This document shows, in pieces, positions 2,851-57,415 of a stretch of DNA of 64,000 bases. The position numbers and the translations under genes are program-made. The notes under the pieces were generated by a model, which was given only the letters and a program-made list of their open reading frames with translations, ran no database searches and had not been told where the DNA came from. Source of the DNA: Bispira polyomma (lineage: Eukaryota). Location of the stretch: contig OZ287750.1 of assembly GCA_965649765.1 (NCBI GenBank), positions 98,332,001-98,396,000 on the forward strand. Direction: 5' to 3'. Every line of letters starts with the position of its first letter. Positions within the stretch are counted from its first letter, which is position 1.

Positions 2851-3196
2851 AAAGTGGTTGTTGTATTAATCCAAGCTATAGAAGCGATCACTTGAGTGTT
2901 CAAATTAAAATAACGAGGAAAGGGACTTTGGAAATTTAATTGTAGCCTCTTCAAAGACAAAGAATACTTAAATCTCATTTATTCTGTTATTCTAGATGAA
3001 AAATATAAATATGCTCTCCCAATTTATAATTTGAAATGTTTAGACACAATTCTGGACAGTGATATTAATTTTACTGTCAATGACGGCCAATTTGTGGCAA
3101 TGCTACTGCTAAGAATTAGAGGCGAGACAATAAAGTTTGCATCCTATCATAAAAAGCAAGCAAATGAACTTGAAAATAGATTAATAAGTAAAATAG

Positions 3197-5020
3197 ATTT
3201 GAGCCTTGATGACTGAAAGATAGTTAGACACTGATGTGTGAGAGGTGTTATTGACTACTAGCACTTCTAAAAAGGCAAGCAATGAAATTGGAGTTATACT
3301 ATAGATGGATATATGAGCCAAACAACAGTAAGCTAGGAACATCCTAAACATGGAAGAGTAAGCTTTTTGAGTGGCTGGTCGGAATGCTTGATGAGCTCGA
3401 TTGGCCGCGCTGTCAGCTAGCCTGTTGACCCAGGTGAAAGAACCGGAAAAAGTTTCACATCTAGATAGCCCAATTTATCTCTAGCAGGTCCTCTTTGACC
3501 TGAAGCCATGTAGGCTTTTTTACTAATTTACTTAGTTTGTCGACATTATTGCGTGTAATCGCCCATCTTGATAGTAAATCCGCGGTAGTGTTTCTTTTGC
3601 CCAAAATATGGACTGTTCTCAATTCAATATCGGCCTTAGCTGCCTCCATGAAAATATTCCTAGTCATTGCGGACAAAGTGTGGTCATAGGTTTTATCGAG
3701 TTTAAAATTAACACGACTGCCTGGACTAGCAATTTTCTTCCAGACCAGTGATTTTTCCAGACTCTTAAGGCAACTAATATGTTTAACATTTCCAAATGGC
3801 AATGGTGTAATCATTATATCCCAAGGGTATTTGTTTAGTATAAATTTCATTGTTACAGCACGCGCCCAAACCTTGAAGGCAGGCATCTAAGTGTACTTCA
3901 TCAGTAACAGGTTTGTGATCAAAAAAAGCTACCCTGTTAAAGCTAGTGAGAAATGTCTCAAACCAATTCAAATCTGTTGAAAGGCTACATCTAATTTATT
4001 ATTGTTGGTATCTCTAGCCCCTCTTAGAGTATCTAGCATCCAGTTTAGATATGCTCTGGAGATTCTAACGCATTTTGACACATAGAGAAGAGAACCAAAC
4101 AGTGATTGGATTTGCCTTCTATTACAGACTTTTTTGTATTTCTAGCTTTGACATATTTGTCTCATTCCTCCAGTTTATTGTCTGGAATTGACACTGTAAA
4201 ATTCTCAGTATTAACTAGATACCTAAACACACCACTTTTGTACTATCGGCTACCACCTTCTCCTCGCTTATGGCAAAACCTAGTTTGTGAAAAATATCCT
4301 TTAATAGATCAAATGACTGAGATACTGTAGCTGGAAGCCCGTAACCTATGATGTCATCAATGTAGTTGATTACATCATGACCATGTGACGTCATAATAAA
4401 TCTTATAGCGTCACTGAGCCGTTAAAAGAAGGCGCTTCCGTGGCGATACCCAAATGGTAGGCAAGTATCTATAAAGAAATTATCTAATTACAAACCTAAT
4501 AAATCATAGTCACCAGGATCAATTTTAACGTGTCTAAATGCACTACTAATGTCTAATTTATATAGAAGTGCACCTTTTCCTAGTTTAATCAAATTTTTGG
4601 TAATATGGTCCATTGTGGGAAGAGTTAGAATGAAGGGAGTACCAAGTATTGTTCTTTCTGCATTGCTGGATTTACAGCATGACCTTCAGGATAGCTTAAA
4701 TCTATGATGACTCGCCTATGTTTTGCCTTTGGCTTTGGACGTGTCATAAAAGGGTAGATGTGAAGTTCGGATAATGGAGGGTCCCTGAAGGGACCTATTA
4801 TTTCACCAAAGTTTTTCTTCTCATTAAGGTAGGCCTTAACATCATCTTTATACTGAATAGCCGAGCTGTGATTTTCCCCTTTGTTTTCTAGGGGGCAAGT
4901 CTTGTCAAAATCTAGCAGAAAACCGAATTTGATCAGATGAAAAAATTGGCGATCCCAGTAATGTTTAAGCAGTTGTTTCCATGCTGCGATATTCAGTTGC
5001 GACTTTACAGGTATTTGAGC
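3197..5020 (-). mobile_element. Internal fragment of an Ngaro-like YR retrotransposon (copy 1): RT, RNase H and the start of YR
   Basis: ORFs 4625-5059 (NHSSA, PFMTRPK..RRVIIDLSYP), 3783-3971 (LDACLQGLG) and 3461-3886 (ADLLSRW). YIDD-encoding sequence at ~4350-4362. YR start AFRPATQKAY..SVSNYLSVIKA. Collinear with the 45-50 kb element. Confidence 0.85.
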
Positions 5021-5865
5021 GCATACCACATTGGTATTATGCAGGAATATGTACCCCATTGGACCTTTTAAATCATGATGGTAGTATTATGGAGTTGGAG
5101 CAAATATGTCCATTATATAAAGTGAAAATAAATTTTCTAGAAGATTTTAGAATTAAACAATGTTTAAAAAGTTTGCATAAAAAAATATGTTTTAAAACCC
5201 TAAGAAGAAATGATTTTATTTGGTTTCAATACAGAATTATTCACAGAATTTTGGGTAGAAGGGCTTATTTAAACAAAATTAATGTACGTAATAATTCCTC
5301 TTGCTACTTCTGCAATATGTATACTGAGACAATAATCCACATGTTTATTTCTTGTCCAGTCGTTATTATATATTTAATTCTGGAATGACTTAAAATCTTA
5401 GCTTCAACAATTCTTTGGTTTGTACCAAGATCTAAATCCAATGGGTATAGTGTTTGGTTTATTGGAGAAGGAAGGTGATTTTTTCCCCCAACAATGTTGT
5501 TTTTATTGTGGCAAAAAAGTATATATTTGGATGTTCTAGAAATTTAAAACCCTTATCTCAGAAGTATATGTATTGACCAAGAATATATAGATAAAACAAA
5601 CTACCAGCTTGACAAGTTTCAAGCAACTTGGTCTGTGTTTAACAGAATAGTACAGAGCTAATTTATATATTTTATATAATTAATTAAAACTTTTGACGTA
5701 TTTACATGTAGACTTATATGGTTGCTTTGCATGTTGTAAACTTATTTTATTTATTTCTAAGCTGAATCCCCGCTCATGTGTTTCAAGTTTTTGCAGATTT
5801 TTATTCTTTTTGTTTTGAATGTAAATGTATGTATTTTATATATATGTTATAAACAAAAAAAAATT
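5021..5865 (+). mobile_element. Tx1/L1-clade LINE 3' end (zf-RVT region, 3' UTR, A-tail)
   Basis: HWYYAGI..DLL, WFQYRIIHRIL, CYFC..ETIIHMFISC; stop at ~5660; AT-rich UTR ending in an A-run at ~5855-5863. Confidence 0.8.
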
Positions 5866-10420: not shown

Positions 10421-12778
10421 TTTCCCATAAATAAAACTCCACTATTTTAAGAAGTGTTAGAGTTATTCATATTATTAAAAACCCATAAAATAAATTCGAT
10501 AAAAGACAAAATTCTAAACCTATCATAACTGTGAGATAATTGTGCCATAAATTAAGGTTTGTTAATATATCTAATTGCATGAGAATGAGTATTATTCGTG
10601 ACTCGAATCCAAGGAAAAAGAAGATTATTTGCAAATAAACTGACACAAACTGCAATGCAAGCTTTGTATTCCAGTCTTTTTATTTACAAGCTTTATTGGC
10701 TATTTAGGTTCCTCTGATGGGTTATTAAAATGTGTACTTACTACTCTACCTTATGTGTGAAGATTTGTCAATATCAAAATATAATATTTGATATGTCAGC
10801 TGTGTTACACTAAAGTATATACTTTTGATGGTGATTCGCTTTATACTATGTTTTCGAAAAGCTATGTAATGTTCATGTCTTGGTGGTGATATAATTTGCC
10901 TGAAGATGCTGTAAGTTAATTGTGGTAACTACATAAGACAATAACAGAGGGATATTAAACACAATTACCACAAAATTCTTCTGTCGTTACTTCTTAGATA
11001 GACAAAGGGATGTGTATACCTGCACATATGTTACTGTATTTTAACTGTAAGTACATAGTTATTCAGCAGGACATACAACCATGCTTTGATAGAAGTGAAA
11101 AAAATGGCTTTTTCCTATGATCATTTGCGTGGACGCAAGCACAGTTAACATATGGATTATCTTTATTACCATTGTATTTTTTGTGCTGCTTGAGAACAGG
11201 CCACATGGGGTTAGTACAATAAGTGTGGTTGGTTTAACATTGTCCTTATACTAATATGTTTTTGTCTCCCTCATGTAACATGTACCCTTAGGCCATATTA
11301 GAGCAAAACACAAGACCCTAGACAGACTGTATATCTAACTGTAATTAATGATCTTTTCTGGCCATGTGATCGTCTCACGTCCAAAAACAATAACCCTAGA
11401 CTTACTGCAGACACCAAAGTTATAAATATTTAGTGATGCTTATTTTTCCCAGGATCACAATTTATTGACTTTTAGAACTAATGGTTCTTTTTGTCAAATA
11501 TCAAATAATTATTTAAAAATTAGTTGCAATGCGAGAGATATACGACAAAGCTTCTAAATCAATCGATTACTTAACACAGGATTTGATGGGTATGCATAGA
11601 TTTTCTGCAACAATATTATTCCTTTCACAAGATAGAGTTTATGGAGAGGCTAAATTAAACACTTGGTTGAGGAGACTGAAAAAAAAAATTACATGGAACT
11701 GGAACTCATCAAGCAAATGGAAAAAGTTATTTACTTGTACTGAAGAAAAGAGTCTAGAATAAGGAGAAAGTAAATACTGGAAAAGAAAATTGTAAGATCT
11801 TTAGTTGAAAGGAAGCAATTTGTTTATATAGCCAACACCATTGAGTAAGCAAATAGTTGCCGAGAGGGAAAAGAAGGGAAAGCACAGGGCCAGAAAGTGA
11901 GAGGCAGCTGACAACTACAGTTCAGTCTATAACATACTACATAGAGAGTCAGTCAAGTAACACACAGAGATCGAGGTACACTGCATCAACAAGTCACTAG
12001 TATACTGCTTTCAATAGGACTCACTGATTGTTGTGTGACAGATACACATATACATTGAGCCATAGAGAGCTGGAGAGATTAGATGGGGGGAGGGCTTATA
12101 CACACAGCAGCTGTGATGCTTTAGCTATTTTCTCCCAGGTGATGTTTTAGAAGCTAATGATGTATAGAGAAGAGAAATTGACAGGGGAACCCTGTATATT
12201 TTAGCAGCAGTTATTGTTATGGCTGTTATTCTTGTATAGTTCTTATTATGATTAGGGTTTGTGTGTGTGTGTGGAGAGAGAGAGAAAAGGAGAGAAAAGG
12301 TATAGAAGTCATATCTGTACAATTAGAGAAGACTGCCAACTGCCACTTGAAAGCCAAGAGAGAAAACACTACACACACTCAAAATTCTCTGTGGACTATG
12401 TGTGAAAACAGATTTTGGCCTGTGTGTGATAAGTAAATACCTGGTTTGTTCTACTCAGGTGAAATGAGTAAAAACCCTAAACTCAAACTGGACAAAACCT
12501 TATCTTGTCAATTGATATTTAAAGTATTTTTTTGTCATTATAATACATAGATTGCCTCTTCACATTGTAGTGAATATCTCAAGAATTCAACAGAATCAAA
12601 CTGTTGACTTTCAAAAAGATGCTTATAATATCATTTTGATGGCAAATTGACTTATAGGAAGCAACCTGAGTACTAAAACTAGTCATTTTTGGCAAAGGAA
12701 CTGTTTTTACAATTTTTTTCCCCAATTGATAATCCTGATAATTCTGTAGGACCCAGGGATCAGGAATCAGTTCTCGCC

Positions 12779-13471
12779 ATGTTTGCTGGTACCCACGCCT
12801 ATTTCACGATGGAGGAGTCCCGGACATGTAGTGTGAATTACTTCTGCTTCGGGGCTCTGCTGATTTTCATCGGTTCCATCCTGCTCTGTTCGTTTGGATT
12901 CACTATCGTGCTTCCTTTTGAGAGGACCAAATACTGGCCGGAAGTGACGTGCCGTGTGGTGAAGGCAGAGGTGAACCAATCCCTGTGTGCATGTGAAGAG
13001 CAGGGTCTGGCTTACCCCGGATGTTCTAAGTTCTCACCGTGTCTGCAGGTCATCATTGCCTACAATGCCACCTACGGCAAGGAGTATGAACAACTAGTAG
13101 CTACTGTATCTACCACAAGCTTCAGTCAAGGGAGTACTATTACTTCTGTAGAAGACACCGGTGATAAGGTGTCTGCTGGTAATCATAGAAATGTGGCTAA
13201 TATGGTAGTCAAACGTAAGAGTGACCAAGAGAGGTTAGACCATTCCATCAGCATCAGGACCAACCTCACTGGTGGCATAGAAAGAACTCAACTTGTACAC
13301 GGAGAAGGACATAGTGTGGTGGATGGTGATGGTGGTGGTGGTGGGATATGGGGCAGTGACTGGACAACCACTAGCTCTGGTACTGGACGCAGGAAGCAGG
13401 AGGTAAAGATTGTCGACAACTACAGACAAGCCATGCTCTTCAGATCCTGGGGTGATGTCTTCTATACACAT
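12779..13471 (+). CDS. BK (Slo1) channel beta-subunit (KCNMB/tipE)-like two-TM protein, coding exon 1
   Basis: GCCATG start (alternative ATG at 12809) after a likely acceptor TGTAG at 12748-49. TM1 YFCFGALLIFIGSILLCSFGFTIVLPF, WPEVTCRV, PCLQVII.Y. Ends at a phase-0 donor CAT|GTGAGT. GC-richer than the flanks. Confidence 0.85.
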
Positions 13472-14489
13472 GTGAGTTACAGTTAGTCTTCCTCTTTCTT
13501 CTACAGTGTATCAGAATGCAGTAGCACTTGGTAATTAAACTCTTGCTTAAACTCAAATACAAATACTTTTATCGATTTACTTATTAATAGAGTTATACCT
13601 AGACATGTTACTATTGATATAATAGTTTTCAGAGTGATAATCTAATGTGTGTAGTCAGATATGTAGTTGTAGATATGTTTATTGTATACAAAGATACATC
13701 AGGAGATATTTTGAGATTATTGTGACGACTTTAAGTTTAAGATCTTTGATAAATATAAGCATCAAGATCATGACCTATATGTGGTGAAAAGTGGGTCAGG
13801 TTAGAACTACCAATTCATTTGGGTCATAATCACTTTTGTTTATTCCTGTGTTCCTTTCAATTTCGATTTCCAATTAGGCTGCTAGATATTTTGTACGACA
13901 AAGGCATATTTTCATGTTTAGTCAACTGTTAGACTAAAGTTTAGATAGACTGATCACATGTGCATTAAATATTATTTATGATTAGGTTATGTAAACAAAT
14001 GAGTGGTGTAAAGTTTTCACGGAGATATCCAGTCACATGGTTGACTTTCACTAGGGAAACTTTGCTATGAACGGTTTTCTTATGACTCACCCTATATATA
14101 TCGTTGGTTTGCCATGGGTTATTTCTGATTTAAGTATCTATGATAGGAATATGAAGCCATAACGTTGGCCATAACGTCACTGTTGGCAAATTATAAAAAG
14201 GGCTATTTCATTTTTACAGTTACCCCACCAAAACCTTAAATTATGGGAATGTCTTTATTGTTTTGTGGCTTACTAAAATATATATTCTTTTAACACAGTA
14301 AGTCATAGTTTTACCCATATGACCTCTAGCATGTATAAAATGAAACATTGCTGCTCTGTCTCTGCTTAATGTACAGAATATATGGAGATATATAACTGCT
14401 TTAAACATCTGGATATGCAGCAAAAAAAATGTAATGCTGATTTTTTTTATCTGGCCGAGAAAGCCAGTGACAACACCATGTAATAAGGA

Positions 14490-18249: not shown

Positions 18250-19100
18250 AAATATTTTTAAAGAAGAATTTAGACTGCAATAACATACTTAAGTTTTTTA
18301 TATATATTCATGTCATTAACTCAAATCATAGACTACTAATTCATTGAAACGTTGACAAATTAGTCCATTTAAAAGGCATTCCAAATAGGTTCATCTTTGA
18401 GCTTTAAGTTCTTTCTGACACAAGAAAATTAAGCCGACTTTACATAAACAATTTCCGCAACCTTATTTTCATCTAGAAGTGAGAAGTTTTCCTAATGAAG
18501 AAAGGAAATGGGGTTCCTTATATATTAGAGTAACTAGAACCGAAGGCTGTTGCTGCCATTAGAAAGAGCATCAGGATGTAATTTGGTTTCTTGTGAAAAA
18601 ATTAGCCTCTTGATGCCCTATTTATTTCAGTTATGTTTTCAGACAAATGGGAATTAGCTTCTTCTAAGTTTGAAAAAAATCTTTGGTGTTTCAACCATTT
18701 TTGCAACATTAGCCAGCCTTTTTTCTTGTAGTTTTTGTCACAGAGGAAATATTGTTACATTTTTTTTCATCATCATTCAGCACAGAAAGTAAAAGCTTGT
18801 CTTTTAATGAAGTCCTTTTTTGGGATAGATTTGTTTTGGTTCTTAGAGACTGTGTAGTGTGAGTACACTAGTTAAAATAAAATAAGACTCAGTCATATAA
18901 ATGTAGGTATAGCAAAAGTGTGAAGAATTTGAATTATTTTGATATGTATTTTTATTAACATATCCATTTTCCTTATCACAACCTCTTGTTGCTTCAAAAA
19001 AAAAAAATTCCTTTCAACATTACACAGAAAATTGTGTGATGGGTAAAAAAAACTAAAGTCACAAGGACACAGATTTACAGATGTCAAGAAAACATAAGTT
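18250..19100 (-). pseudogene. Decayed LRR (TLR ectodomain-like) segment in the KCNMB-like intron
   Basis: Minus-strand translation gives SKNQNKSIPKKDF, WLMLQKWLK..FQT*KKLIPICL and YIRNPISFLH*ENFSLL. Paralogous to ~33530-34140. Confidence 0.45.
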
Positions 19101-20796
19101 ATCTTCAACTTACCAATTTGTTGAAAAATGACCTTTTAATAGTGGGTTCTTCTCTCATTCAGGTTTATACACTCCATACAAGCTCTTTGAATAGTCACAA
19201 CAGTATTCCGGATGACTTGCTTTTCCAGGTTTTCCCACTCTTTCCGAGTGCCTGGATCTGCATGACCAAATTGGAACAGGTGGATTATGATCCATAACAC
19301 TCTTGTGACTATGCAAAGACATTGTACCGAGCGTATTAACCTGAATGGGCTACAACCCACTATAAACAGTTATTTTTTCAATAAATTGACAAGTGAAAGA
19401 CAACTTTTATGTTCTTGACATCTGTTTTTCTGTGCTTGTGACTTTTGATTTCTCGCCCATCACATTCTTTCCTTGGTAATTCCTTAAAGAATTTTTTTGC
19501 TGGGAGCAATAAAAGCTTAAAATAAGGAAAAAAGATGTGTTAATACAAATACAAATCAAAAAAATTAAAATTGTTCACACTTTTGAAATTACCAACATTT
19601 ATATGTCTGAGTCCTATTTTATTTTGACCAGTGTACAAGACAATAATGGTCATTACAAATAATCTGGTCACAACACTATGACCCAATGTGTTGAAAGTGA
19701 CATCAAAGCAAAACAATATCATAAGGACTAGAGTAATGTTTAATATATTATTTTACAGTTCAATTTTAAGCTGTGAAGTTAATTGGAGTTATCATAGTTT
19801 CCAAAGTGATTACTTAAAGTGGTACTGGATGTTAAGCTTCATAAGACAGTAAAACTCTTGTTTGAGGGTTTTATTTTTTTACACATTAATATGTATGTTT
19901 ATACAAGTACAGATAATAATAATTAAATGGTAAAATTTTTTTGAAATTTTGACACCCATATAATGTAGTGCCAAACAACATACTATTAACTTTTGACACC
20001 CATATACTATTAAATTTTGACACCCATATAATGTAGTGCCAAACAACATACAATTAACGTATCAAATAATATATCACTCCCAGAAACCAATATTAAGGTC
20101 ATAATACATAACAACGTTAGTGCTATATCCAAGATATAAAAATGACAAATATCACTTTTGTTAATTACTGTTATTAAATAATTATTACACATGTTAACTA
20201 AAACTTCAAAATTCTCAGGGGCTAGCCTAATTGATTAACTGATTTGAAATAATGTAGAGCATAGGGTGTGTTAAATATTCTCAAGGCTGCTCCTAGTCGA
20301 ATCTTTCCTCTGCTATATACTAGCATGCTAGTTTCTAAAACAGTACATGTCCATAAGTCTGGCATAAACCTGCTATTACAATAGACAAAATCACCCCTGT
20401 ACTGGTTCATAAACACACCATAAATGGATATTAATATTACATTTGCTTGTGACGACCTCTTCTTTTAGCCAACATACCACACAATTGTGGTTTTGTCTAG
20501 TTACACAATATTTTTTGTGTATTCTATCCTTTATATTCCTTTACATCAATTTATTAACATACTTGAAGCTAGCTTCTAAAAATGGCGACAGCTCAAGGGT
20601 GCCCAGCTTCCCTACATACTGTAGGAGAGGAGTTAACTTATAGGATGTGGGGAAATATATCTAATCTTGAATAATTTACCTTATTGAAATGTTCTTAATC
20701 TTAACTTATATGTTTCCTTATCTTTCTGAGTAAGATCCCTATAGGAAACTTGAATTTATTCAAAGCAATGTACAACCCTGTTCCTACACACTATCA

Positions 20797-21041
20797 GCGG
20801 TGGCCTAGTGGTTAGCAAGCATTGCGCTTCACAATCACTGGTCTCTCACCTCTGGGCGGAGTGAGTTCGTATCTCGTCGATGCCTATGTGGGAAAGGTGG
20901 TAGTTCCTTACTGTGGGCCGCTGGTTTCTCTGCAGAACCTTGACCGACTGTATGCAGTGTTTCCTCCAGCGTTTCCAACTACCCGTCCCAATATAACCTA
21001 CTAAAAGGTACTAGAGTGGACGATAAATATCCAAATTCAAA
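20797..21041 (+). mobile_element. tRNA-derived SINE with 15-bp TSD
   Basis: A box TGGCCTAGTGG, B box GTTCGTATC, (CAAATT)-type tail. TSD TCCTACACACTATCA at 20782-20796 and 21042-21056. A second copy lies at 57168-57415. Confidence 0.9.
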
Positions 21042-39629: not shown

Positions 39630-42600
39630 AGAGAGAGAGAGAGAAATTTTTTATTTTAGTGCCACCTGCACTCGAATATAAATATACATTTTTAACAGGT
39701 CATAATTATGGCAGCCAGCCCAGCATACATGGGCTTATGAGGCACTTTTTTATGTATATTACAATTACTGTCATGAGATATAAATAATATATATACTATA
39801 TACAGTAGTTACACATATCAATATATACAAATATTACATAAAGTATAAAACATGTGGTACATAGGTATATCATATAAACAGTAGTCCAAGGCTAATTAAA
39901 TATTAGAGATTTACGTTTATCATATATAGTTACCAAATAATTACAAAAATGGGTTATATTTTCTTTTTGCATCAGCAATTTTAACTTTTCTGGGTAACTT
40001 AAAACATCAAAATCAGGGTATTTACTTTTAACATAGTTTATGAATTTACTCCGCTCATCATAAAAAGCTACACAGTTTAAAGAGAAGTGAATTTCGTCCT
40101 CTATATGTTCATTGCAGAGTTTGCATATTCTTTGTTCAAGTTGAACTTGATTCCAACGGCCAATTCCAATTTGTAGAGGTAGTACTCCACTTCTAAATTT
40201 AGATACTATTGCCCTATGTTTTCTGTTTTTGATTCTATAAACATAAGGTTCCAATTTTGCTGTTTCTTTATATGTACAATATGTCCTTAGTTTAGGACTA
40301 TTTTTGACATTATTTGTCCATAAGTCTTTTTCTGTGTAGCTTATTTGAGATGTACACCAATATATATCAACAGGCAAATGGTTTCTGAATGCGGACTGAA
40401 GGTTTAGCTTTTCAAATATTTTTTTAACTTCATTACTCCAGGAGAGCTTGTTTTTAAAAATAAAATCCCACTGGAAGACGTTATACAACAGTCTTGATGT
40501 GTCTAACTTGCATAGTTTATTCCAGAATTAAAAAATTTGTAGTTTTCTCCGACACTTACTTGTTAACCAATCTAGATCACCAATTAATGCAACAGTTGGT
40601 GTAAATTTTGGGGCCCCCAGAAAAATCTCATTGCTTTGTTTTGGACGGATTCAATTTTAGGCACATCTTTGTATCCCCATGCTCCTGAGCCATAGTCCAG
40701 AATTGGAGCAACACACATGTCAAATAATTTTTTATAACTATTGTAACCTAATCCATTTAAACAGTTAAGTTTATTAATAATACTACCAAGAGCCCTATTT
40801 CCGGAATCTGCTAAAACTAGAGCCATTTTGCCAATGTCTACAAATTCATTAAAAATCATCCCTAAGTATTTGTATTCTGAGACTGTATCAAGGGCATCAC
40901 TTCCAAGTTTAAAACTAAATTTTGTTTGATTTTGTGATTGTTTTCTAAAATGTACTACTTGTACTTGGTCTATTACATTGAGCATCTTTTGTAAATCTCC
41001 TTCAGACTCTGCTAGAATTGCAATATCATCTGCGTAGAGAAGCACTGAGATACTTTTGTTATTGTCTAATGGTATTCCCAGACCTAGGTTATTTATTTCA
41101 TTAACGATATCATTTATAAATATGTTAAAAAGAGTTGGAGATAAAGTATCACCTTGGCGTACTCCTAGTTTGTTGGAAAATGTCTTTGTTAAACTACCAT
41201 TTATATTAATACAACATAGGCAGGACTCGTAAATACATTTGATTAACCTGTAAGTTTTTCCATTTATTCCCACCTTGAGTAGTTTATAAAGCATAAATGT
41301 TCGATTTACCTTATCAAAAGCTTTTTCAGCATCTATAAAGGCCACATATGTTGATTGATTTTTTGCTTTGCGGTTTTTAATATATTTAAGAGTATAAAGA
41401 CATGGTCTTCACAGCTACGATTTGGTCTAAATCCGTTTTGTTCATCTGCTAGGACATCGTTTTGTTCAGGGTAGTCAGATATTCTTTTATTTAAAGTAGT
41501 GGTGAATAGCTTATAGACAGTCGATAACAGACTAATTCCTCTATATTGGGTGGGAATTCTGGGATCTTCTGTTGAATTCTTTGGTAATGGTTTAATTATA
41601 GCTAATCTCCAGTTTGAGGGAATAATGCCAGAGTTATAAATTAAATTAAAGAGTTCTGTGAGCAATCGGACTGAGTTTTCATTTTTAAACACTTCATAAG
41701 GGAGATTTTCTAAACCAGTAGCCTTGCCGTTTTTTACTTTACTTAAGGCTTTTTGAATTTCTCTTTGGGATAGAGTCATGCTTAAATCATTATCAGTATT
41801 ATAGGACAAGTTTGATTCAAGGACTTTTAGTTCATCTGTAATGGCTTCATTGAATTTTGTTAACTTGACACTACCTTCATTACTATTGTACAGGTTTTCA
41901 AATTCATCAGCCCATATTTTAGAAACTAAATCTGGATCATTACTAATGTATTTTTCCCCATTTTCGTCAACCCCATATACTTCCATCGGGATTCTATCTG
42001 ACTTGCGTTGTGGCCCTAGTGACTTTATATGTTTCCAAAAATCTCTGGGATTTTTGTAGTTGGCTGTTTCAATTGAATCTTGTTTTTGCCTGTTGTATTT
42101 TCTTTTTTCTCGTTTGTAAAACTTATCAAAGTGATTACAACAGGTTTTATATAGGTTCAGTTTAACCCTTCTTAGGTTAGACGATTGGGGACATTTCAAG
42201 TATTCATTTTCACTAGTTAAGACAGCTTTCCACAGTGTTTCTAACTCTGAATTCCAGAAAGATTTTGGTTTAAACTTTCTCCTTTTGTTAGCTTGCTTAT
42301 TGATATTTATCTTTTTTAACATAACCTTCATTTCATCACAATAAATATTGCAGAAACTTTCATATAATTTATCAACAGAGCATTGCGTGATTTCTGTGTT
42401 TAAGAAACAAGATATTAGGTCACCCATAGCACTTTTAGCCATATCACTACTCAAAAAGTTACAAGGTATATCTTTTGTATAGTACTTGGGCTTTGATTCC
42501 TGACAATTTAGGTCTAGAGGTGTAACATTTTGCTTACTAGTTTGCTTATCTATAACAATATGGGGTACATATTGCAGCTCAAGTATCGAGTGGTCTGGTA

Positions 42601-42870
42601 TTTTGTCGGTTTTTATATTTAACTTGTTAAGTAAATTTGTTACAGAATGAACTTTGAATACAAAACAATTTTTAACTTCATCATGTGGAATACAAAAATA
42701 ATCTATGACAGAGCTACCCTTTTTGGATATAGATGTAAAGTTGTTAAATTCAGGAGTAACTCTTCCGTTCGCTATGCAAAGTTTACTTTCTTTCAGGAAG
42801 TCAATAAATTCTTGAAAGTGACCACCGCGAAACTTGTCTATATTTTCTCTTTTTGTTACATTGTCTGCAA
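39630..42870 (-). mobile_element. Crack/Daphne-like (CR1/L2 group) LINE, 5'-truncated in the endonuclease, frameshifted ORF2
   Basis: ORFs 41333-42913 (SVIDY, PDH, YRGISLLS, EQNGFR), 40584-41345 (KAFD, GVRQGDTLSP, LYADD) and 39892-40488 (KLRTY, RICKLC..EDEIHF..C). AATAAA plus (CT)n tail at ~39630-39656. CTGCA at both junctions. Confidence 0.9.
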
Positions 42871-44279
42871 GAATCAACAACATTGGTTGTTCCACTAAAT
42901 ACACAATTAACATGCTACCAACATCCAGAAATGTTATTCATCACCCCTCCCCCCCCCAAAAAAAAAAAAAACAACAACATATTGTTGAAGTGAATTTATC
43001 AAGCTTTATAAGACAGACTGCTAAAACTTGAAATTTTATACTTTGAAATCCATCAAGGCTTTAATTGATTTTAATTTGTACATTATTCATTTTATATGAT
43101 TATTCTCAAGTAAATATGGACACAACAGTAATGTGTGAAATATTTGGTAAATTTTAAAATAAATAAAACTAGTTTATAGTTGGGTTTTTACATTAATTGG
43201 TTATGCCTAATATTTTTAATTATCAATAAATAGTAGCCTTAGCAACGGAGTCCAATACAACTCGCATTTTAAACTTCAAACGTCAATGTTCCAAAACCAC
43301 TTGAACCGTGATATTTTACAAGCCTTTTATATACAATCAAGAAGCCATATTCTTAAACCAGACTGCCAACTTCACACAATTGTCACAATTGAAAGGTAAT
43401 AGTAGACTTTCTCAGTGCCTCATTATTAATCAGATGTAGAATACTGAAAGCTACTGTTATGCAGAAATTATTTTCTCTGTTTTTTTCAGTCACTTCTGCT
43501 CTGATAAGTCATTACTAATATAAATGTGCATGTGTTTGATACTGAACTGAAAAAAGTAATTAAAGTGGCATATAAGCCACATAGGGGTTATTTAATAATT
43601 ATATTAAAGTAATAATATTTGTTATTTTTAAGTAGTTAATGCGGCATATAAACCTACTACAGGGGTATTTCATATTGAAGTATCTGTATTTGTTATTTTG
43701 ATGTTACGTGGTATCTAAGTGCAATAGATTACTATTTAATATTTAAATCGAAGTAGATATATTTGTTATTTTAAAGTGATTCAAATGACGTATAATCCTG
43801 ATAGAGGCCCGGGTATTCTTTTGAATTTTTTTAAAATTGGTTACATATTGTAGTGTCATTAAAGACCCATGTCACTATAATATATAAATAAATAAAAGTT
43901 GTAGCTGCATCGTGCTTGTTTTGTTTGTTTATCTCTCTGCTTGTTTATAGGTTGGTGGTTCACACATTAGTTGCTGTGGTAGGGTGGTATTCTTTACCAA
44001 GGCCTAATTCTACACTAATAATCCAATCAAAGAATGTTGTAGCTGTTTCATTCTGTGTCACATGTGTCTTAAGGTTTAGGCCTTAAAGTAAATATTTTCT
44101 GGATAGGAAACTGTTTAAATTTTGATGAGCTCAGCTGTGTTAGCAACCAATTTGCCACTGGTGCAAATTGCCATATGAATAATACAAGTGTTCTCTGTCA
44201 GATTCTCACTTTAGAGAAAAGAATTTGCTGATATGGTGTATGCTGTAGTGGTCATCTTGTAAGATACTTTATTAATAGC

Positions 44280-44510
44280 TCCAAGTCGAGTAATGTATAA
44301 GACATATTTGCTTGTTTAGGATCCAATTTTGTATGAGACATAGGTGCTTCTCTAGGATCCATTTTATTGTAAGACATAGACACTTTCTCAGGAACCAATA
44401 GGTTATAAGACATATGTGCTTCTTTAGGATCCAATTTATTATAAGACATAGGTGCTTCTTTAGGATCCAATTTATTATAAGACATAGGTGCTTCTTCAGG
44501 ATCCAATTTG
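44280..44510 (-). repeat. 36-bp minisatellite, ~6.5 copies
   Basis: Unit TTGGATCCTAAAGAAGCACCTATGTCTTATAATAAA; translates open as (LDPKEAPMSYNK)n. Confidence 0.85.
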
Positions 44511-45040
44511 TTAGAAATATTGTTCAGAAAAAAAATGGTATCATTGTCACCTGAAATATTAGTACATGTAACTTTCTTAATGTCACTTTTTATATCTATA
44601 TTTTTTTTAGGTGCCTTGTTTGGATAATAAAAAGGTGGAGTGGCATTTGATCTCAGTGCCTCCCCAAAGTGTGGATTTATGAATTAATATATAAATAAAA
44701 CACCATTCTTTGGGCATATTAGTTTAATTCACTAAAGTTAGATCTACAGATTATGTACAAATTGTAATATCATTAACTAAAAGATTAAGTCCACCTTAAA
44801 TTAATGTTGAAGTTAAGAGCATGAGTTTAAGTCCATGCCTGAGTTTAAGATGTTGACTTAACTTCATTTAAGATTACATTAAATTTAAGTTACGTATAGT
44901 TACTAATCTTATTACTTCATTTAAGATTACATTACAGTTTAAGTTACATAAAGTTAAGGTGGCCTTAAGTATTGACTAATATATAGTGTATATAAATGCC
45001 ATTTGAGTTTATTGTCTGAACTAAAAACACCAAACCCCAA

Positions 45041-46026
45041 CTAGTAGGTAGAAGAGGAAGGTTGATGTAGTGAATTTTGAAAGGCCAACGCCACCTGGTC
45101 AGAGGAGTCATGGTCTTGTGTAATGTAGCGCCAGACGCATTCTGAGGTCCAAGTGCCATGACGTTGAATATTTTGAATGGAAACATTGTTGTTAAAGGCC
45201 CACATGGCTCCAGAACGTCTAAAAGAATGAAAAGTGATGTTAGAATTTTGCAAAACAAGATCTTTAAGAATGATAGCGAAGTTAAGCCTGACTTTAGTGT
45301 CAGTCATAGGGAGCCACGTGGCCAAGCTTTTACATTGAAACAGAGGCGAGTTTTTTTGACCAGGAGCGATGGCAAGCATATTGGAAATGGCAGCCACTGG
45401 ACACAGTGGGGAACCCCCAAGTGAGGGTATTTTTAAAAGTCTAAGTGTATCCCTGCTCTGTAATGTCTTACTCCATTTAATCAATACTTGAAGACCAGGA
45501 GGTGCAAATATGGCTAGGTGTTGTAGGGGTGAGTAAGTCGAGTTAGAGTGGGGAACCAAATTTGATATTCTCAAGAATGAGAAAAATGCAAAGAGGTAGA
45601 TGGCCTTGTAGACCTGACCCATGTACATAAAGTCACATTTTTTGATGATTTGGATCAGCAGAGGAATGTCAATGATGGATTTAAGTTGTACTTTAAAGGG
45701 TTTATGCAATGCAATTGCCTTTTGGAAATACTTTATTCTAGGGTCCATGAAGGCTGAGGTGTCAAGGCCATATAGGGCCAACCTTGCCTTGATTGCAGCC
45801 AAGTAATTTGCTATACCAGAGTGAGAGGTGTTGTTTTCAGCCAAAACCTCGAGGAAAGCTAAGAGAATAGTAGCCGTGATTGGTTGTATTGCAATATTTG
45901 CAAACACACAGTAAGCTAGGAAGTTTCTGAACATAAATTTATAAGATTTTTGAGTGGAGGGTCTGAAGGCTGTATGAGCCCTTCCAGCTGCTCTGCCAGC
46001 TGCCTTTGCCAGCCAGGAGTTTGTAC
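45041..46026 (-). CDS. Tyrosine recombinase (predicted spliced exon; ORF has no N-terminal ATG)
   Basis: Catalytic set FLRISNL, WSKT, HSFRRSGA, HGTW, VWRYI. Preceded by TTCTTTAG|GT. Has a small deletion (QHLA--IF) relative to copy 3. Confidence 0.85.
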
Positions 46027-47924
46027 CTAAAGAATACAATCAAATATTCCAGTCAAGATGGGTGGCTTCCACCCCTACAGGTAACCATATTGGTTCTACT
46101 ATAAATTTCCTTAATCTGTTTGAAGGTTCGCTGGTTATTGCCCATCTAGATAGCAAGTCTGCTACCTCATTATTTTTACCTAAGACATGTACTACTCGTA
46201 GGTCAATATCTGCCCTGACAGTTTCCATCTGGATGTTTCGAGCCATGGCTGCCAGAGTAAGATCCCTAGTTTTGCCATTGGTAAGTACCGAGACTACTGC
46301 CTGATTGTCGCACAATACCACAATTTTATTTCCTGCCCAATGGCAACCCCATAACCGGATAGCCACGAGAATATTGATCATCTCCAAGTGAACAATAGAG
46401 TAATTTTGAAAGCGTAGAGGAAGTTGAAGTGTGTACACCTGATTACCCCATCGCCCACCCAGACCTTGCAAGCATGCATCTAGCTCTATACCCATTTTGG
46501 GGATTCTATGGTCGAAGAAAGCAACACCATTGAATTGTGAAATGAATTTACTGAACCATGCAAGGTCTTGTTTCAATTCAGTTGTTAATTGTATGGACCT
46601 GTCATCATGTGCCGAGCGAAGTACATCAAGCATTCTGTTTAGAAAAAAGCGTGAAACTTTAACACACTTGGATACATATAATAGGCTGCCTAGTAACGAT
46701 TAGAGATCTCGTTTTGAACAGTGTGTTTTTTTATGCCACTTTAGGCATACATTCTCGACATCATTGAGTTTTTCCGGTGGAATTGAGACAGTGAAATTTT
46801 CTGTGTTTATTAGTACACCCAGACATGTAACACTAGTAGCTGGGCTAATGAGTTTTTTCTGGCTAATTGCAAAACCCAAATCTACTAAAAGTTTATGGAG
46901 CATTTTAAAAGACTTTTCTGCCGTACTGGGCATACCGTACCCTATGACATCATCAATGTAATTCGTGACTTTAAAGCCCTTTTTAGACATAATGAAGCGG
47001 ACAGCGTCACTTAGGCATTGGAATATTGCACTTCCGTGCCTGAACCCAAAGGGCAGGCACGTGTCCACATAATAGTGGTCGAGTTTTTAACCTAAAAGGT
47101 CATAGTCTTTAGGATCCATTTTGACGTGCCGGAATGCCCGGCTGACATCAATTTTGTACAAAAGGGAGCCTTTGCCTAAGCATCTAACTTTATTTGTGAC
47201 ATCATCTATAGTAGGTAAGCATGAAGGGGGTGCCTAGGTAGCTATTTCTTAGAACCCCTGCATTGACAGATTCACCTAAAGGAAAGCTGAGATCAATTAT
47301 GACTCTTCTATGTGCACCCCCAGGCTTCTCCCTGGTCATGAAGGGTGATATATGTAAGTTTTTTATTGGAGGTTTCTTAAATGGACCTAGTATAGCTTTG
47401 AACTGCTTTTCTTCTTCTAAATATGCTTCAACATCTTTAGTGTAAAATTTTGCAGAATTGTGATTTGTATCCTTATGAGATAGCATATTTGATCTATCAA
47501 AGTCAACTGGAAAGCCATAGCGTATTAGGAAGGGGAGTTGTTTATCCCAATAGTCACCTAACAATTCTGCCCATTTGTCTGGTTTTAATGCAGATTCTAT
47601 TTGTATCTGAGAGCCACAAAAGTTATGCTGTTTATCAGCTGTTATGATCGCATGCAGTTTGCACATAGATGCACTACTTTTATTTTTCCTGTCTCGTGTT
47701 GGTAGTTTTAAATCCCCTAGGGGAACAAACCCAAATTTGTCAGTGCTTTGGTCATACCATTCCCTGAAGGTGGCATTATCTACTGCTGTACGCATAAGAT
47801 CCTTGTGCTTTGGCTTCACCTGTAATTGAAACTCATATTTATCCTCAGTGTTTATATTACTGTTGCTATCCCCTTTTAAGTTAAGTTCATCCCGTCCCAT
47901 GAGTTTAACTTTGGTTTTAGCAGT

Positions 47925-48380
47925 GTAAATAACCTGATTTTTTGAGTCATCCATTTGTTTTGTATTAGTCATGTTATGACCCCTATGGGGTTCCGCAGTG
48001 GGATCATTTACTATTTCCCCTTGGTTACCTATCATTATGGTTTCTTCATATTGAAATTGTTCTAGGGGGGGAAACCTGTTGTGTTGGTTCTTGAGTTACC
48101 CGTTTGTTTTGTATTAGTCATGTTGTGACCCTTATGGGGTTCCGCAGTGGGATCATCTAATGTTTCCCCTTGGTTACCCATCACTATGGTTTCTTTACAC
48201 TGAAATTGTTCTTGGGGCACAAACCTGTTATGTTGGTTCTTTGAGTTATCTGTTCGTTTTGGATTAGTCATGTTGTGACCCTTATGGGGTTCCACAGTGG
48301 GATAATTTACTATTTCCCCTTGGTTACCCATCACTATGGTTTCTTCACACTGAAATTGTTCTAGGGGGAAAAACCTGTTG
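47925..48380 (-). repeat. Three-copy 150-bp (50-aa) tandem repeat in the pol N-terminal linker
   Basis: AAACCTGTT anchors at 48371, 48221 and 48072; unit HNRFFPLEQFQCEETIVMGNQGE..SKNQ. Confidence 0.9.
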
Positions 48381-48903
48381 TGTGTGCCACTTAAAGTATC
48401 ATTATTAATTTGTTCACCCCGAGCTGAGTGTTTTTTGACACCACCTTTCTGGGGAGGGGGGGAAATAACCACCTTATTGTTGCCTTTTACCCATTTGGGA
48501 ACAATTGGGCCAGCATTCACCCTTGTTGGTGGGTGACATTTCCTGACATTCCCTGTAAACATACATTGGTTAGTGTTTTTATACAATTTCTGTTTTACAT
48601 TTCCTGTAAACATGCATTTGTTAGTGTTTTCGGACCATTTGCTTTTTACATGAACATTATTTGACATTTCGTGAAAGCACGAGCTGATTTTGGGGACTGT
48701 TTCCACTTTTTCGTTTTTGTTACTGATTTCCTTTTTATTCCCTTCCTGTACCACTTGTGCATAAGATATTTGATTTACTTTCTTCCAGTCGTGTCTCCAA
48801 TTCATGCTCGCCCTTTCACACATTTCACTATTTACACATATTCTAGTACTAAATTTCTTTACCTCCAACACTTCATCATATTTGATTTTTTCTGATCTTT
48901 TGT

Positions 48904-48937
48904 GCACTGCCCCTTGGCAGTGCCCTAATCGTTTTTT
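48904..48937 (-). promoter_or_regulatory. -1 programmed ribosomal frameshift signal (gag to pol)
   Basis: A AAA AAC (48937-48931) in the gag frame, 7-nt spacer, hairpin GCACTGCC-AAGG-GGCAGTGC. The -1 frame is that of ORF 48062-48907. Confidence 0.8.
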
Positions 48938-49920
48938 GAATTTGAGTTTTGGTTTGAAGTTTTCTTACAGTTTTTTGCCGGATGTTTGTGCTGTTTGCCA
49001 TAACCAGCACATGTCGCACACACATCAGAATACAATTGACCCCCTGATTCATGGTCTGACTTGTGAGAGCATGAACCTTTTTGATAAAATCTACACGGGA
49101 TTGCCGTAGTTTTGTCTCTGCCAAATTTTTTAATTGAACTACCCCCCACAATTTGATAAGATACCTTTTGGGCATGTGCCCTTCTTATTCTTTCAATTTG
49201 GTTTGTGTCGCCCCATGTTACTTTGCCATCTTCCATTCTACACAAGAGGACAGCATGAGCTCCCTTGGCAGCAGCCCAAGAGAAGCCATGGCTGTCCTCC
49301 ATTATATCATTCAGGTAATCTAACATGTGATTTTTGATAGCCACATCAGATTCTTCGCGTATTATAATGCTAAATCCAGCTATCCACTGTGCCATTGAAA
49401 ACTGATCATAACTGACCCTACCTTTGTTGCTTCCCCCCAACACATAACTTTGAGGCCATGGAACCTGTCTCTTAACATAAACAGTTTCTGACCCCCCTCT
49501 TTGGGATTTGAACCTACCCGACTCGTTTAGCAGGGCCAGCTCCTTTAGTCTGTCATCTACCTGGTACTGGACTGTTTGTGAGCGTCTCAATACTGTCAGG
49601 GAAGGGATCACCAGGTCGTCCTCCGCAGTCGACTTTGATGTGGAAGCGGGTTTAGTAGTATCATACTGAGAGGCCGAAGCCCCTAACGTGTCACCATAGT
49701 TCACTTTTTGCTCTATTTTTGACATGTGTCCTCCCAATTCCTTCAATTCTTCTAAGATTTTCATATTCACTGATTTCACTGACGAGTGTTCACTTTCACT
49801 ATAAGAATTATTCATTTCATCCCTGGAATTGTCTAGAACATTGTGTACAAATTGACAGTTTTTCCCCACTGGTCTCTTGTGGTTTCCGGCACACTTAGAA
49901 CATTTATATGTTTTAGGCAC
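48925..49920 (-). CDS. Gag-like ORF1 (N-terminal CxxC..H..C finger, C-terminal Cys/His finger)
   Basis: 331-codon open frame starting GTG; copy 3 has ATG at the equivalent site. CSKC..H..C at the N-terminus; CRFYQKGSC..H..CATC..H..C at the C-terminus. Confidence 0.8.
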   Translation of the reverse strand: MPKTYKCSKCAGNHKRPVGKNCQFVHNVLDNSRDEMNNSYSESEHSSVKSVNMKILEELKELGGHMSKIEQKVNYGDTLGASASQYDTTKPASTSKSTAEDDLVIPSLTVLRRSQTVQYQVDDRLKELALLNESGRFKSQRGGSETVYVKRQVPWPQSYVLGGSNKGRVSYDQFSMAQWIAGFSIIIREESDVAIKNHMLDYLNDIMEDSHGFSWAAAKGAHAVLLCRMEDGKVTWGDTNQIERIRRAHAQKVSYQIVGGSSIKKFGRDKTTAIPCRFYQKGSCSHKSDHESGGQLYSDVCATCAGYGKQHKHPAKNCKKTSNQNSNSKND

Positions 49921-50549
49921 AGCGATTTATTACTTCTGTATTGTTTGTATAGTCTACTGAAAATAGAATAACCCGGTTTTGATACATGCACGCACGCTAG
50001 AGGTTTTCTATATATTATTTTGACTGGTTGTAAAATTTGATGTATAAAGGTATAGGTGTATAAATTAGATATATGTAAAATCATAAAACAAAAAAAATAA
50101 GAAGATAAAAGCACTTTCCTCTAACAAAGCTCTATGAGCAGTATGAGCATGACTCAAAACATTGAGTATTTTTTAAGTCTCCTTAAGTACAGGAACCAGC
50201 ACACCAGTCACCTCAAGATGATCCACGTTTACACTAAAATATCCAGTAAATGTAACTGACTCTAACATATGAAGACAGTCCAACACTGTAAATTCCTATT
50301 ATAAAACTTTTATATTTAAAAATGGCGTCTTGCCTTCTTGGTAAACAAATTTATAATGAGGATTATGTGAAAAGAGCGGGAATAGCTGGGGTTATGACCC
50401 CAGTGTAGCCAATTAGAGACTGAATAAGAATAGTTTTAGCAATATTTTGGCAGCACTGACCCTGCTGAGTCCCAGGCCTCACCATACACCCTGGGGACCA
50501 CCTATTTGGATTTTTTAAAAATTCTAAAAAGCCACAAACACTGTATAAC

Positions 50550-52789: not shown

Positions 52790-55700
52790 GAGGCTGTTGT
52801 AACGAGACCTTTTGGGCATAATGTTAATTCATAATGGTCCACAACGCAAACAAGTATTTATGCTTATTTGAAAGTATCTATTTATGTGCTGCTTGTCAGC
52901 TGTAGATACATTTCTGGAGCCTATTAATGTTTTTTATGATTTTTCATCCAAAGAAATACCTTTCACCAAGTTCCCTAAAATAATTATTATTGCAGTAATT
53001 AATATCAGTGCACAAAGATCACTAGAAATTTTAAGAAAGGTCGTTCTGCAGTACTCTCCTAAAACAATCAGCGACCTGGGATCCAGCCTGGGCCGAATCT
53101 GTGATGTAACGCCACACACACTCCGAGATCTAGGTTCCCTGCCTCTGAATATCCTGTAATTTGACATTATTGTTGAAGGCGAATGAGGCCCCCGAACAGC
53201 AAAACGAGTGAAAAGTAAAGCCAGACGACTGAGCACCTACCATTTTAAAGACTTGCTGTCTGCGAACTCTTGTATCAGTGAGAGGAACCCACAAACTAGC
53301 CAACTTAAATTGAAACAAAGGAAGGCGGATGATACTCAATAAATTTTTCAAAGCCCTGACATGACATAAACTAGACTCAGGTATGCTGGGAACCGAAATT
53401 AACTTAACAGCATCATTGGTTTGCATTGTCTTAGACCATTTTATCATTAAAACAACATAGCCTGGCTTGAAAATGACATCAGTCCTAGCAAGTTGTTTCA
53501 GGGGTGAAAAGTGAAAAGTGGCTACTGAATGGGGGCACAAGTTGGAAAGCCTCAAAAAGGTGAAAAAACTAACCAAGTAGACTGCTTTGAAAACCTGCCC
53601 CATATAAGTAACTTTATATTTACCCACAATCTTCTTAAGCAGAGGGAGATCAAACAAGGACTTCAGTTTTACCTGCAGAGGCTTATACATTACCAGCGCT
53701 CTAGTAAAGTACGTAATTTTTTTATCCTAAAACGCTTCCACATTTAAGTTAAACACCACACACTTTGCCTTTATAGCAGACAATTGATTGGCAATTTGAG
53801 AGGCTGACATGCTATTATGACATAGAAATTCAAGGAAAGCCAAAAGCTGGAACATATTCACCTGATATAAGGGCCAGTTGAGGAAGGCCCTAAAAGCCAG
53901 AAACAATCTGAAGGCTCTATCATATTCTTTCCCAGTGGCAGGGGTGAATGCAGTATGCAACCTCTCACAAGCCTTTCTAGCCAGCATAGACTCAATAGAG
54001 TGTACACCTGAAATAACACTATGACTTGCTATATAAGCGGATTAATATCAAGTAAAGAGTTATGAGTAGGAAGCCAGGTGCCAGGCCCGACTAATTCATA
54101 CAATAATATATGGTTCACCTCAGTCTCCACCTATCTGGACAGCAAGTCGAATTTGCTAGCCTACATATAAATATTTCTAGTGTAAGCAGCCAAGGTGGGA
54201 TCTCTGGTATGTCCAGTCTGTAACACACCTACCACAGTTTGATTATCACACTTGACCAACACACGTTGGCCCTGCCAAGCTTGAGCCCAGAGCTTGATCG
54301 CTACAAGTATATTTAACATTTCAAGATAAGCAATGTTCATTTGTGTCATATTCATGGGTATTTTAATCTGATACACTTAATTATAATAAATGCCTCCCAT
54401 TCCTGTAAGGCAAGCATCCAGTTCAATTTGTGCATTATCCACTTTAATGGCTTTATGCCAGAAAAAGGACACACCATTAAAATGCTCTACAAAGGTTCGA
54501 AACCAATTCAAATCTTGTTTGAAGTCTTCTGTAAATTTTATGCGCTTTCTGGTATGATTGTTTTTTTAATAGATCAAGCATCCTGTTAAGGAAAACTAGC
54601 ATATTTAATGCATTTTGCGACATACAGCAAAAGCTCCATTAAGGACTGCAGTTCATGTTCTGAACTGCAAGCATTACACCTATCCTGGATTTCCCTTAAT
54701 TTCTCACTGGGAATAGACATCGTCCATTTAACAGTGTCTATCAAAATTCCAAGACAAGTAACCACTGTAGTCGGTGCTAGTGATATTTACTGGCTCACTG
54801 TTAAACCAAGTTCAGCAAGCACTTGCTGCAATCTTACAAAGGTCTTGTTAATTTTGCTAGGTAAAGAGACCGCCAAAAAAATGTCTATGTAGTTGAGCAC
54901 TACATGACCTTCAAATTTCATAACGTAAACGGCACCAGAAAGACGCTAAAAAATCATCAAGCCATTTTGATAAGTGAATGGCAAAGATTTGTCAGTATAA
55001 TAGAATTTTCAGTGTGAACTAAGCAGATCTATGTCCCCCAGATCAACAGGTATGTGGTGGAACGCTGGATTGATGTCAACCTTGAATATTTGGCAACCTT
55101 TACTCAATTTCAGAACCTCACTGGTGAAGTTGTCAATACATGGATAGGATAACAAAAATTCTGTACCAAGATACGATGTGGGTGAAGCTGCTGCATTAAC
55201 AGAGAGCCCTTAAGGCCAACTTAAGTCCACAATAACGCACCTATTAGCCGAGTTTGGTTTATTTCTTGTTATTTAAGGTGAACCGTGTAGATAAGCAAAA
55301 GAGGAGTTTTCGAACGGGCCCAACATCGTCCTAAATTTACATTCCTCTTTTATATACACATCTACATCTCGGGGGTATTCCTCCGCTGAGGAGTGATTAT
55401 TACTATCAGACTGGGTAATATTAGAACGACAAAAATCAAGGGGCATTTGCCAGTCTCAATAATTTCTCAGATACTTTTCCCACTTTTCTGCATGTAACTG
55501 CGATTGTACTGGGATTTGCTAAGTTTGTCAATTTCCGTGCCTTCATCCTTAACTAGATTACCCAGATTCGAAAGGGGAGTAAACCCATAAGGAAAGTCCG
55601 TTTGAGTACACCACTGTTAATATGTGGGATCATTGGCCACTTTTAAAAGCAAGTTCTTTTTTATTTCTTTTTTGGTTTTAACTCCCAAGTGTATTTTTAA

Positions 55701-56750
55701 AACGAGGTGGCAACATAACAATCTGTGTCATTATTCTCTAAGTTGTTGTCCCTCCCGACGACCCCCTTACCACTTCTTTCATTACGACCCAAGGTGCTAA
55801 CACAAACGCCCCCCTTTTGTGTAATGGGATCATTTTTGTGACATTCTGTTTCTGCTAACACCAAGCACCTATTGTTTAGTGGAACGTGTGAAGTGTCATT
55901 GGAAGTTTGACCAGATATATTGTGCTTGACACCTCTAGACCCAACTTAACCATTGTTACCTGAAGACGCTGAAGTCAATAGGTGCCAAGCACTGAACATT
56001 GTTAGATCATCATAAGAGAGACGGGTTTTCGAGCTACCTGTGAGGACATTGTCTTGGGGCGACTCTACAGACTTTTTAATCAACACATCAGCACCACCTG
56101 TTTTCTGCGACTTGATTTTACCTGACGAAATCTCATTTAGGGCCTTAAGTCTCTAATCGACCTGGGCTTGATCTGTGTATTTGTTTTTAAATAGTCGACA
56201 CTAGACACGATACTGTCAGTGCCACTAGTGTGGTCTTTACCCTTGTTTACAGGAATAGAAATATCAGAATTACTGGCTTGTTTAGATGTGAGGTTCTCTG
56301 CAAGTGCTGCCTCCGTAAGTTGAACTTTGGTCCATTCGTTTCATAACCTTGGACAGTGATTATTAACTGTTGCAAAATGGCTGTAGATACAGCTAAATTC
56401 TCACCTGTGGAATGAACCAGCGGGTCCTCGCCACGTGACACAGCACTCGCCGCCTCCAACCTAACAGTTCCCTTTGTACAGTTTCTGCCAATCGGTCTTT
56501 CATGATTTTTCAAACATTACAGACAGAATACTGACTTAATATCTGGCATGACTACAGAGTAAACTAAAATAATAAAAAAATTGGTAAAATTCAAATAAGC
56601 ACAATGGAAAACTTTCGGTTTTCACACCAGGTATTTTCACTACTTCACTCCTGTAAACAAACGGTAAAAGGAGGGAACTTTTGAAAAGGGGTTGGCTTTT
56701 ACACTAGGCCAGCCATCCCATAATAGCAATCAGACTGGTACCCCAGAAAT
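52790..56750 (-). mobile_element. Ngaro-like YR retrotransposon (copy 3), more decayed, gag C-terminus deleted
   Basis: gag ATG at 56549 (MPDIKSVFCL*CLKNHERPIGRNC), SSGKIKSQ motif, RT and RNase H remnants at 54030-55500, YR remnants 53727-53987 and 53130-53690 (FLRLSNL, WSKT, HSF) continuing to VWRYI. Confidence 0.88.
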
Positions 56751-57167: not shown

Positions 57168-57415
57168 TTTTGAATTTGAATTGGGATATTTACCGTCCAC
57201 TCTGTTTAGGTTATATTGGGACGGGTAGTTGGAAACACTGGAGCAACACTGCAGACAGTTGATGAAGGTTCTGCACTGAAACCAGAGGCCCACAGTAAGG
57301 AACTACCACCTTTCCCACATAGGCATCGACGGGATTCGAACTTACACTACCCAGAGGTGAGAGACCAGTGATTGTGAAGCGCAACGCTTGCTAACCACCA
57401 GGCCACCGTGGCCCC
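57168..57415 (-). mobile_element. tRNA-derived SINE, full length, with TSD
   Basis: Reverse-complement homolog of 20797-21041, starting GGGGCCACGGTGGCC. TSD ATTGTTTGGTTGGA at 57154-57167 and 57416-57429. Confidence 0.9.

Follow-up and report, generated by a model that had tools for sequence, protein, structure and literature searches.

Evidence for a probable spliced fusion of the Gag N-terminus to the tyrosine recombinase in Ngaro-like retrotransposons

How do retrotransposons that carry a tyrosine recombinase (YR) express this enzyme and deliver it to its site of action? The standing guess for the Ngaro group is a frameshift, described as a probable ribosomal one (-1, pol to YR) by Poulter and Butler (2015) as quoted in PMC13003380, and in fungal Ngaros the variable frame of YR has been noted without explanation (PMC3783388). 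The question is raised by three Ngaro-like copies in a 64,000-nucleotide (nt) stretch of the Bispira polyomma genome (GenBank assembly GCA_965649765.1, contig OZ287750.1, positions 98,332,001 to 98,396,000, forward strand), which we call the window. By comparing these copies with their relatives, we conclude from sequence that such elements very probably make YR as a spliced fusion, in which the N-terminal part of Gag is joined to the recombinase. No report of such a splice in YR retrotransposons was found in the open full-text literature; the primary Ngaro papers and Repbase lie outside that scope, so an earlier mention is possible.

The window is AT-rich (~34% GC), contains no N, and holds fragments of long interspersed nuclear elements (LINEs) as well as the three minus-strand gag-pol-YR copies. 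Their features are given below in window positions, with a slash at each splice point.

48925..49920, minus strand: copy 2 gag open reading frame (ORF), 331 aa; its first codon is GTG where relatives have ATG
49518..49920, minus strand: predicted first coding exon of copy 2, which encodes the Gag N-terminus in 134 codons plus 1 nt
49512..49520, minus strand: copy 2 candidate phase-1 donor CGG/GTAGGT, GT at 49517-16
46027..49517, minus strand: copy 2 predicted intron of 3491 nt, containing the C-terminal part of gag and all of pol
48904..48937, minus strand: copy 2 gag-pol -1 frameshift signal, with A AAA AAC at 48937-31, a 7-nt spacer and an 8-bp hairpin at 48923-04
46040..48964, minus strand: copy 2 pol (reverse transcriptase, RT, plus RNase H), interrupted by stops and a frameshift, with its stop TGA at 46042-40 and without methyltransferase
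46052..46057, minus strand: copy 2 branch-point-like CTTGAC, its A 26 nt 5' of the acceptor G, overlapping the last pol codons
46025..46039, minus strand: copy 2 T-rich tract and candidate phase-1 acceptor TAG/GT, AG at 46028-27
45041..46026, minus strand: copy 2 predicted exon 2, the whole Cre-like tyrosine recombinase, without an ATG until codon 31 (45934)
50319..50332, minus strand: copy 2 5' motif with a YY1-like core, shared with the A-repeat end of relative L003 (L003 3970 and 9580)
53031..56549, minus strand: copy 3, a decayed gag-pol-YR with an internal deletion, stops and frameshifts
56116..56124, minus strand: donor CAG/GTAAAA of the decayed copy 3, GT at 56121-20
54006..54016, minus strand: copy 3 acceptor TTTCAG/GT, phase 1, AG at 54009-08
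3175..5116, minus strand: copy 1, truncated pol and the 5' part of YR, with CCG at 3446-3444 in place of the YAG of its relatives; the window holds no gag for this copy

A preliminary description of this DNA had proposed the splice on the basis of these copies, and for copy 2 its account is borne out: the donor and the acceptor (CTTTAG/GT) lie where it placed them, both in phase 1 and 3491 nt apart, the branch-like CTTGAC is present, YR has no N-terminal ATG, and removal of the intron joins 403 nt (134 codons plus 1) through a shared Gly to 327 YR codons, an in-frame product of 462 codons. The distances from the upstream stop that it gave for the three copies (13, 21 and 17 nt) are likewise correct. 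Copy 3 had been said to carry the same pair of sites in frame; both are indeed phase 1, across an interval of 2114 nt, but the frame holds only locally, as the ATG at 56549 lies 428 nt 5' of the donor (phase 2) and the intervening sequence contains stops and frameshifts. For copy 1 it had rightly recognized CCG in place of YAG, one base away from the true position. Copy 2 is itself decayed (GTG at the gag start, stops and a frameshift in pol, a 4-residue gap in YR), and because all three copies are decayed, the window alone is weak evidence. Upstream of RT, the pol of copy 2 also contains three 150-nt (47935-48383) and two 51-nt (48546-48647) tandem copies, and copy 1 is flanked and truncated by LINE fragments on both strands (44-3213 and 4969-5385). 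Split direct repeats were looked for around copy 2 and not found.

Protein searches returned 526 YR and 406 Gag homologs, whose loci were taken from ENA and JGI assemblies, and the comparison set consists of 22 elements, drawn from eight sample sources, in which the start of YR can be read; a stop-riddled gag remnant (L017, 19.6-20.3 kb), the gag of the upstream element in L027 (a match that stops short of the helix end) and near-identical duplicates were not counted. Compared among 16 of the elements, the recombinases are 30-76% identical and four-fold sites are 35% identical at the median, so that third codon positions are saturated and those that are shared do not reflect recent inheritance. 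The set also includes a young family, L018-L024, of 7.2-kb copies that are 99% identical and mostly have intact ORFs; it possesses both predicted splice sites, which in L018 would join 6759 to 9909, and its YR has its first ATG no earlier than codon 31; its host is that of ENA ERZ22147071. In L007, L009, L014, L026 and L027 the elements are clustered or head to tail (a YR end, then another gag), which may be due either to tandem insertion or to A repeats collapsed in short-read contigs. Locus L006 (1-3901, minus strand) is a partial element whose neighbors are a gene for a family B DNA polymerase and an ORF of 1080 aa, possibly a Polinton.

A phase-1 YAG stands exactly where the YR frame opens in 21 of the 22 elements (17 of 18 in the first set, copy 1 being the exception, and all four fetched later), in line with the earlier expectation that it would recur across families. 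The acceptor consensus is TTNYAG/G, with T at -6 and at -5 in 15/17, Y at -3 in 17/17 and G at +1 in 14/17; it is preceded by an AG-free zone, the previous AG being a median of 34 nt away compared with 13 for other AGs (p 6e-6), and by a tract richer in pyrimidines (0.66 vs 0.53, p 1e-4). Where this can be scored, the site lies 17-19 codons 5' of the conserved AFxxST turn. A stop in the YR frame occurs within 20 codons upstream of the acceptor in 19/21 elements, and none occurs within 40 codons downstream, so that coding constraint begins at the acceptor. With the elements treated as independent and a coding-sequence background of 0.19, the chance of finding a phase-1 YAG within a 5-codon window in at least 17 of 18 elements is ~7e-12. 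Database YR proteins carry [LIVSPTA][GD], the pair of residues to be expected from this DNA pattern, at the site in 28 of 30 correctly anchored N-termini, against a background of 24%.

At the other end of the predicted intron, every one of the 17 gags scored carries a phase-1 donor immediately following its N-terminal pair of helices, in 13 cases GTA and in four GC. The GC donors are always AG/GCAAGT, and GC-AG introns need a strong donor context of just this kind. Position -2 is A in 15/17, and the first 14 donors scored match a U1-like consensus at 6-8 of 9 positions; the donor pattern is present in 14/14 of these, as opposed to 14% of 232 other Gly codons in the same ORFs (elements again treated as independent), and the three loci fetched later fit as well. 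The preliminary description had asked whether the Gly codon is always GGT followed by AR. It is GGY in 17/17 and never GGA or GGG, while other Gly codons are GGY in 57%, but the four elements with a GC donor depart from the strict form. The residue that follows is K, R, M, N, T, I or S, all with A-starting codons, in 96 of 105 contexts (background 42%); exchange among K, R, M, N and T is chemically odd, but the codons of all five start with A. The further proposal that the gag motif G(K/R)xKS is partly a splice donor stands for the Gly and its neighbors, which are splice-shaped, and not for the rest: the donor is tied to the end of the helix, and KSQR reflects protein constraint. In distant families the donor Gly precedes the KSxR motif by 8-35 residues, so that the two are separable.

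A real acceptor might still be served by a different donor, in gag, pol or the leader, with the Gly motif maintained by protein constraint. Donor-like sites of equal score do exist in several gags, the donor scan covered gag, and the pairing of the predicted donor with the acceptor is itself something we infer. However, no other phase-1 gag column is common to more than 4 of 13 gags, and protein constraint can explain neither GGY in every donor (~1e-3 even among Gly codons before A, 54/82) nor the occurrence of GC only in a perfect context, nor the exchange of K, M, T and N after Gly; we regard this alternative as highly improbable.

Structure prediction bears on where the recombinase begins. 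The model of the YR exon (mean pLDDT, predicted local distance difference test, 86) has confident helices at residues 3-17 and 22-41 and matches Cre end to end (PDB 4crx and relatives; E 9e-8, template modeling score 0.63-0.68, 17% identity), although the YR profile found no real match when PDB was searched by sequence. The first ATG of copy 2 and L018, at codon 31, falls inside the second of these predicted helices. For the Gag head, the prediction comprises a Cx2Cx3HxRPx4C finger, a helix of ~35 residues (45-80), a low-confidence linker and a helix pair (108-133); the model (predicted template modeling score 0.24) gave no significant match in a fold search, and no fold is therefore assigned. 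The Gag N-terminus as a single query found no match, and neither YR nor Gag found one when collections of viral and prokaryotic sequences and phages were scanned.

Several observations weigh against a spliced fusion. Ten of the 22 elements come from one host sample (one long-read assembly), the p-values for donor and acceptor conservation assume independent elements, and the donors of the distant families were first picked by eye. G at +5 is missing in 8/17 donors, and a branch-like YTRAY, where a U2-type intron would have its branch point 18-40 nt upstream, is present in 11/17 (background 30%) at scattered positions. No fusion protein, transcript or junction read appeared among the best 150 of 697 Gag-N profile matches (from 1.84 billion representatives) or among 240 listed homologs, a blank that says little because these entries are ORF calls on genomic contigs; the fetched loci contained no intronless Gag(N)-YR copy. 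Finally, L005, copy 3 and L026b have an in-frame ATG 4-7 codons past the acceptor, from which most of the first helix would be kept.

This last observation favors the translation of YR alone, from its own ATG or a near-cognate start, on an internally initiated RNA or on a spliced RNA with a non-coding leader. In those three elements it may be a side route; as the general explanation it is very unlikely. The position of the first ATG varies from -19 to +122 codons, and none is conserved among the relatives, where a conserved one would have spoken against the splice first proposed; in 9/18 elements it lies at +31 or later, and a protein begun there would lose the first helix and some of the second. 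Moreover, a non-coding leader would not fix the acceptor in phase 1 (21/21) and would not account for the donor in gag. Trans-splicing of a spliced leader is rejected, since a leader ending in AUG would produce a phase-0 junction rather than phase 1.

The elements do use frameshifting, but at the boundary of gag and pol, where five of them (window copy 2, L004, L005, L007 and L018) have a canonical -1 signal consisting of A AAA AAC, a short spacer and a GCACTGC hairpin; the conserved KN(D/E) ending of Gag is due to this slippery signal. In the distant families L010 (1562-1564) and L013 (1317-1319), gag and pol share one frame and are split by a single TGA, an arrangement that suggests stop read-through in families of this type. 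By extension, YR might be an appendage of Pol, reached by a programmed -1 frameshift in a short overlap or by read-through of the pol stop: in four of 19 elements, copy 2 and the young L018 family among them, YR shares the frame of pol and only one stop lies between, and six have a -1 overlap. Yet none of these -1 overlaps contains a slippery heptamer, in contrast to the clear one at gag-pol. Three elements have a +1 overlap instead, and in six, including L016 with its intact ORFs, continuous reading is impossible because of gaps (up to 776 nt) or of stops that follow the pol stop in the YR frame. An extension of Pol would also leave the donor and acceptor consensus unexplained; as a general route it is refuted, and we judge it highly improbable.

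If the spliced fusion is correct, a single transcript would have two fates. Unspliced, it would provide Gag, Gag-Pol (by the -1 frameshift, or by read-through in distant families) and the genome; in the alternative fate, the host spliceosome would join the phase-1 donor after the Gag N-terminal helix to the phase-1 acceptor just after the pol stop, giving a protein of ~450-510 aa composed of the Gag N-terminus (finger, long helix, linker and helix pair), one junction residue and a complete Cre-like recombinase. Modest or GC donors would be expected to leave most of the RNA unspliced. We give about even chances to the idea that the long helix lets the Gag head co-assemble with full-length Gag, by which the recombinase would enter the particle together with the cDNA, in which case both enzymes would carry the same head, as Gag-Pol does; alternatively, the finger may bind DNA or chromatin and target DNA. 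More tentatively, it is possible that splicing of the Gag head is general for Ngaro-type YR, that the annotated YR ORF is only the second exon, that the head is required for particle loading or for aiming at DNA, and that the spliced RNA, having both terminal repeats, may yield intronless non-autonomous copies.

The fusion, if true, has several consequences. YR ORFs annotated from their first ATG would be truncated, and biochemical or retrotransposition assays would need the fusion; the ratio of recombinase to genome would be set by host splicing, providing the host with a point of control; and a retrovirus-like splicing strategy would have been reached in an unrelated group of retroelements.

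Elsewhere in the window, the minus strand carries a frameshifted LINE-type RT element (39892-42913), and the plus strand an ORF of 265 aa (12689-13486) that matches (Pfam E 3e-5) the family of beta subunits of calcium-activated potassium channels. Diverged duplicated blocks occupy 21.8-36.8 kb. Two copies of a 200-nt repeat, 91% alike and on opposite strands (20798-21000 and 57207-57408), contain tRNA-like boxes; ARAGORN finds no tRNA in the repeat, which is probably a short interspersed nuclear element. Two inverted-repeat elements resembling miniature inverted-repeat transposable elements and a 36-nt tandem array lie at 2294-2597, 18913-19585 and 44260-44547.

By architecture, the elements fit Ngaro (order DIRS) as defined in PMC3783388, PMC4157794 and PMC9210276. 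YR lies downstream of gag and of pol with RT and RNase H; there is no methyltransferase, protease or DDE integrase, the intact L018 pol consisting of RT and RNase H only and ending soon after, with the window pol aligning to the same end; and split direct repeats in the order A1-ORFs-B1-A2-B2 are found in the relatives L003, L004 and the L018 family but were not found around window copy 2. A spacer of ~650-790 nt separates A2 from B2 in relatives (L018 11783-12429; L003 9609-10394), whereas drawings of Ngaro usually place the repeats side by side as B1A2B2, and the YY1-like motif at the A-repeat end is perhaps a promoter. As a further difference, a hydrolase ORF was not seen in these elements. 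DIRS1-like elements, which have inverted terminal repeats with an internal complementary region and a methyltransferase, do not correspond, as the repeats in L003, L004 and L018 are direct rather than inverted and methyltransferase is absent; nor do PAT-like elements, given the absence of a methyltransferase after RNase H (definition in PMC4157794). These elements also differ from the published picture of Ngaro in the expression of YR, for which the evidence points to splicing instead of a frameshift. The predicted intron resembles the U2 type, with a GT or GC donor in U1-like context (17/17) and, at its 3' end, a YAG that follows a T-rich tract and a zone free of AG (21/22).

The fused protein would differ from Cre by an added N-terminal module. 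Lambda integrase has an N-terminal arm-binding domain, and the Gag module would be placed like it, by analogy and not by homology. As for the splicing itself, the env genes of gypsy and retroviruses are likewise third ORFs downstream of pol, which become accessible when gag-pol is spliced out as an intron, while unspliced RNA is kept as genome (PMC4276936). Here, by contrast, the third ORF is a recombinase, and 130-190 Gag residues would be retained. The env of avian sarcoma-leukosis virus shares the first gag codons. Closest in design is the SD' RNA of murine leukemia virus, in which a gag-internal donor is joined to an acceptor close to where pol ends, so that P50 consists of the Gag N-terminus and integration-enzyme sequence, and which keeps both ends and is packageable (PMC10496198). 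P50, however, is an accessory protein whose share of the enzyme, a DDE integrase, is limited to the final 116 aa, whereas the predicted Gag(N)-YR fusion would contain the whole enzyme and be its main source.

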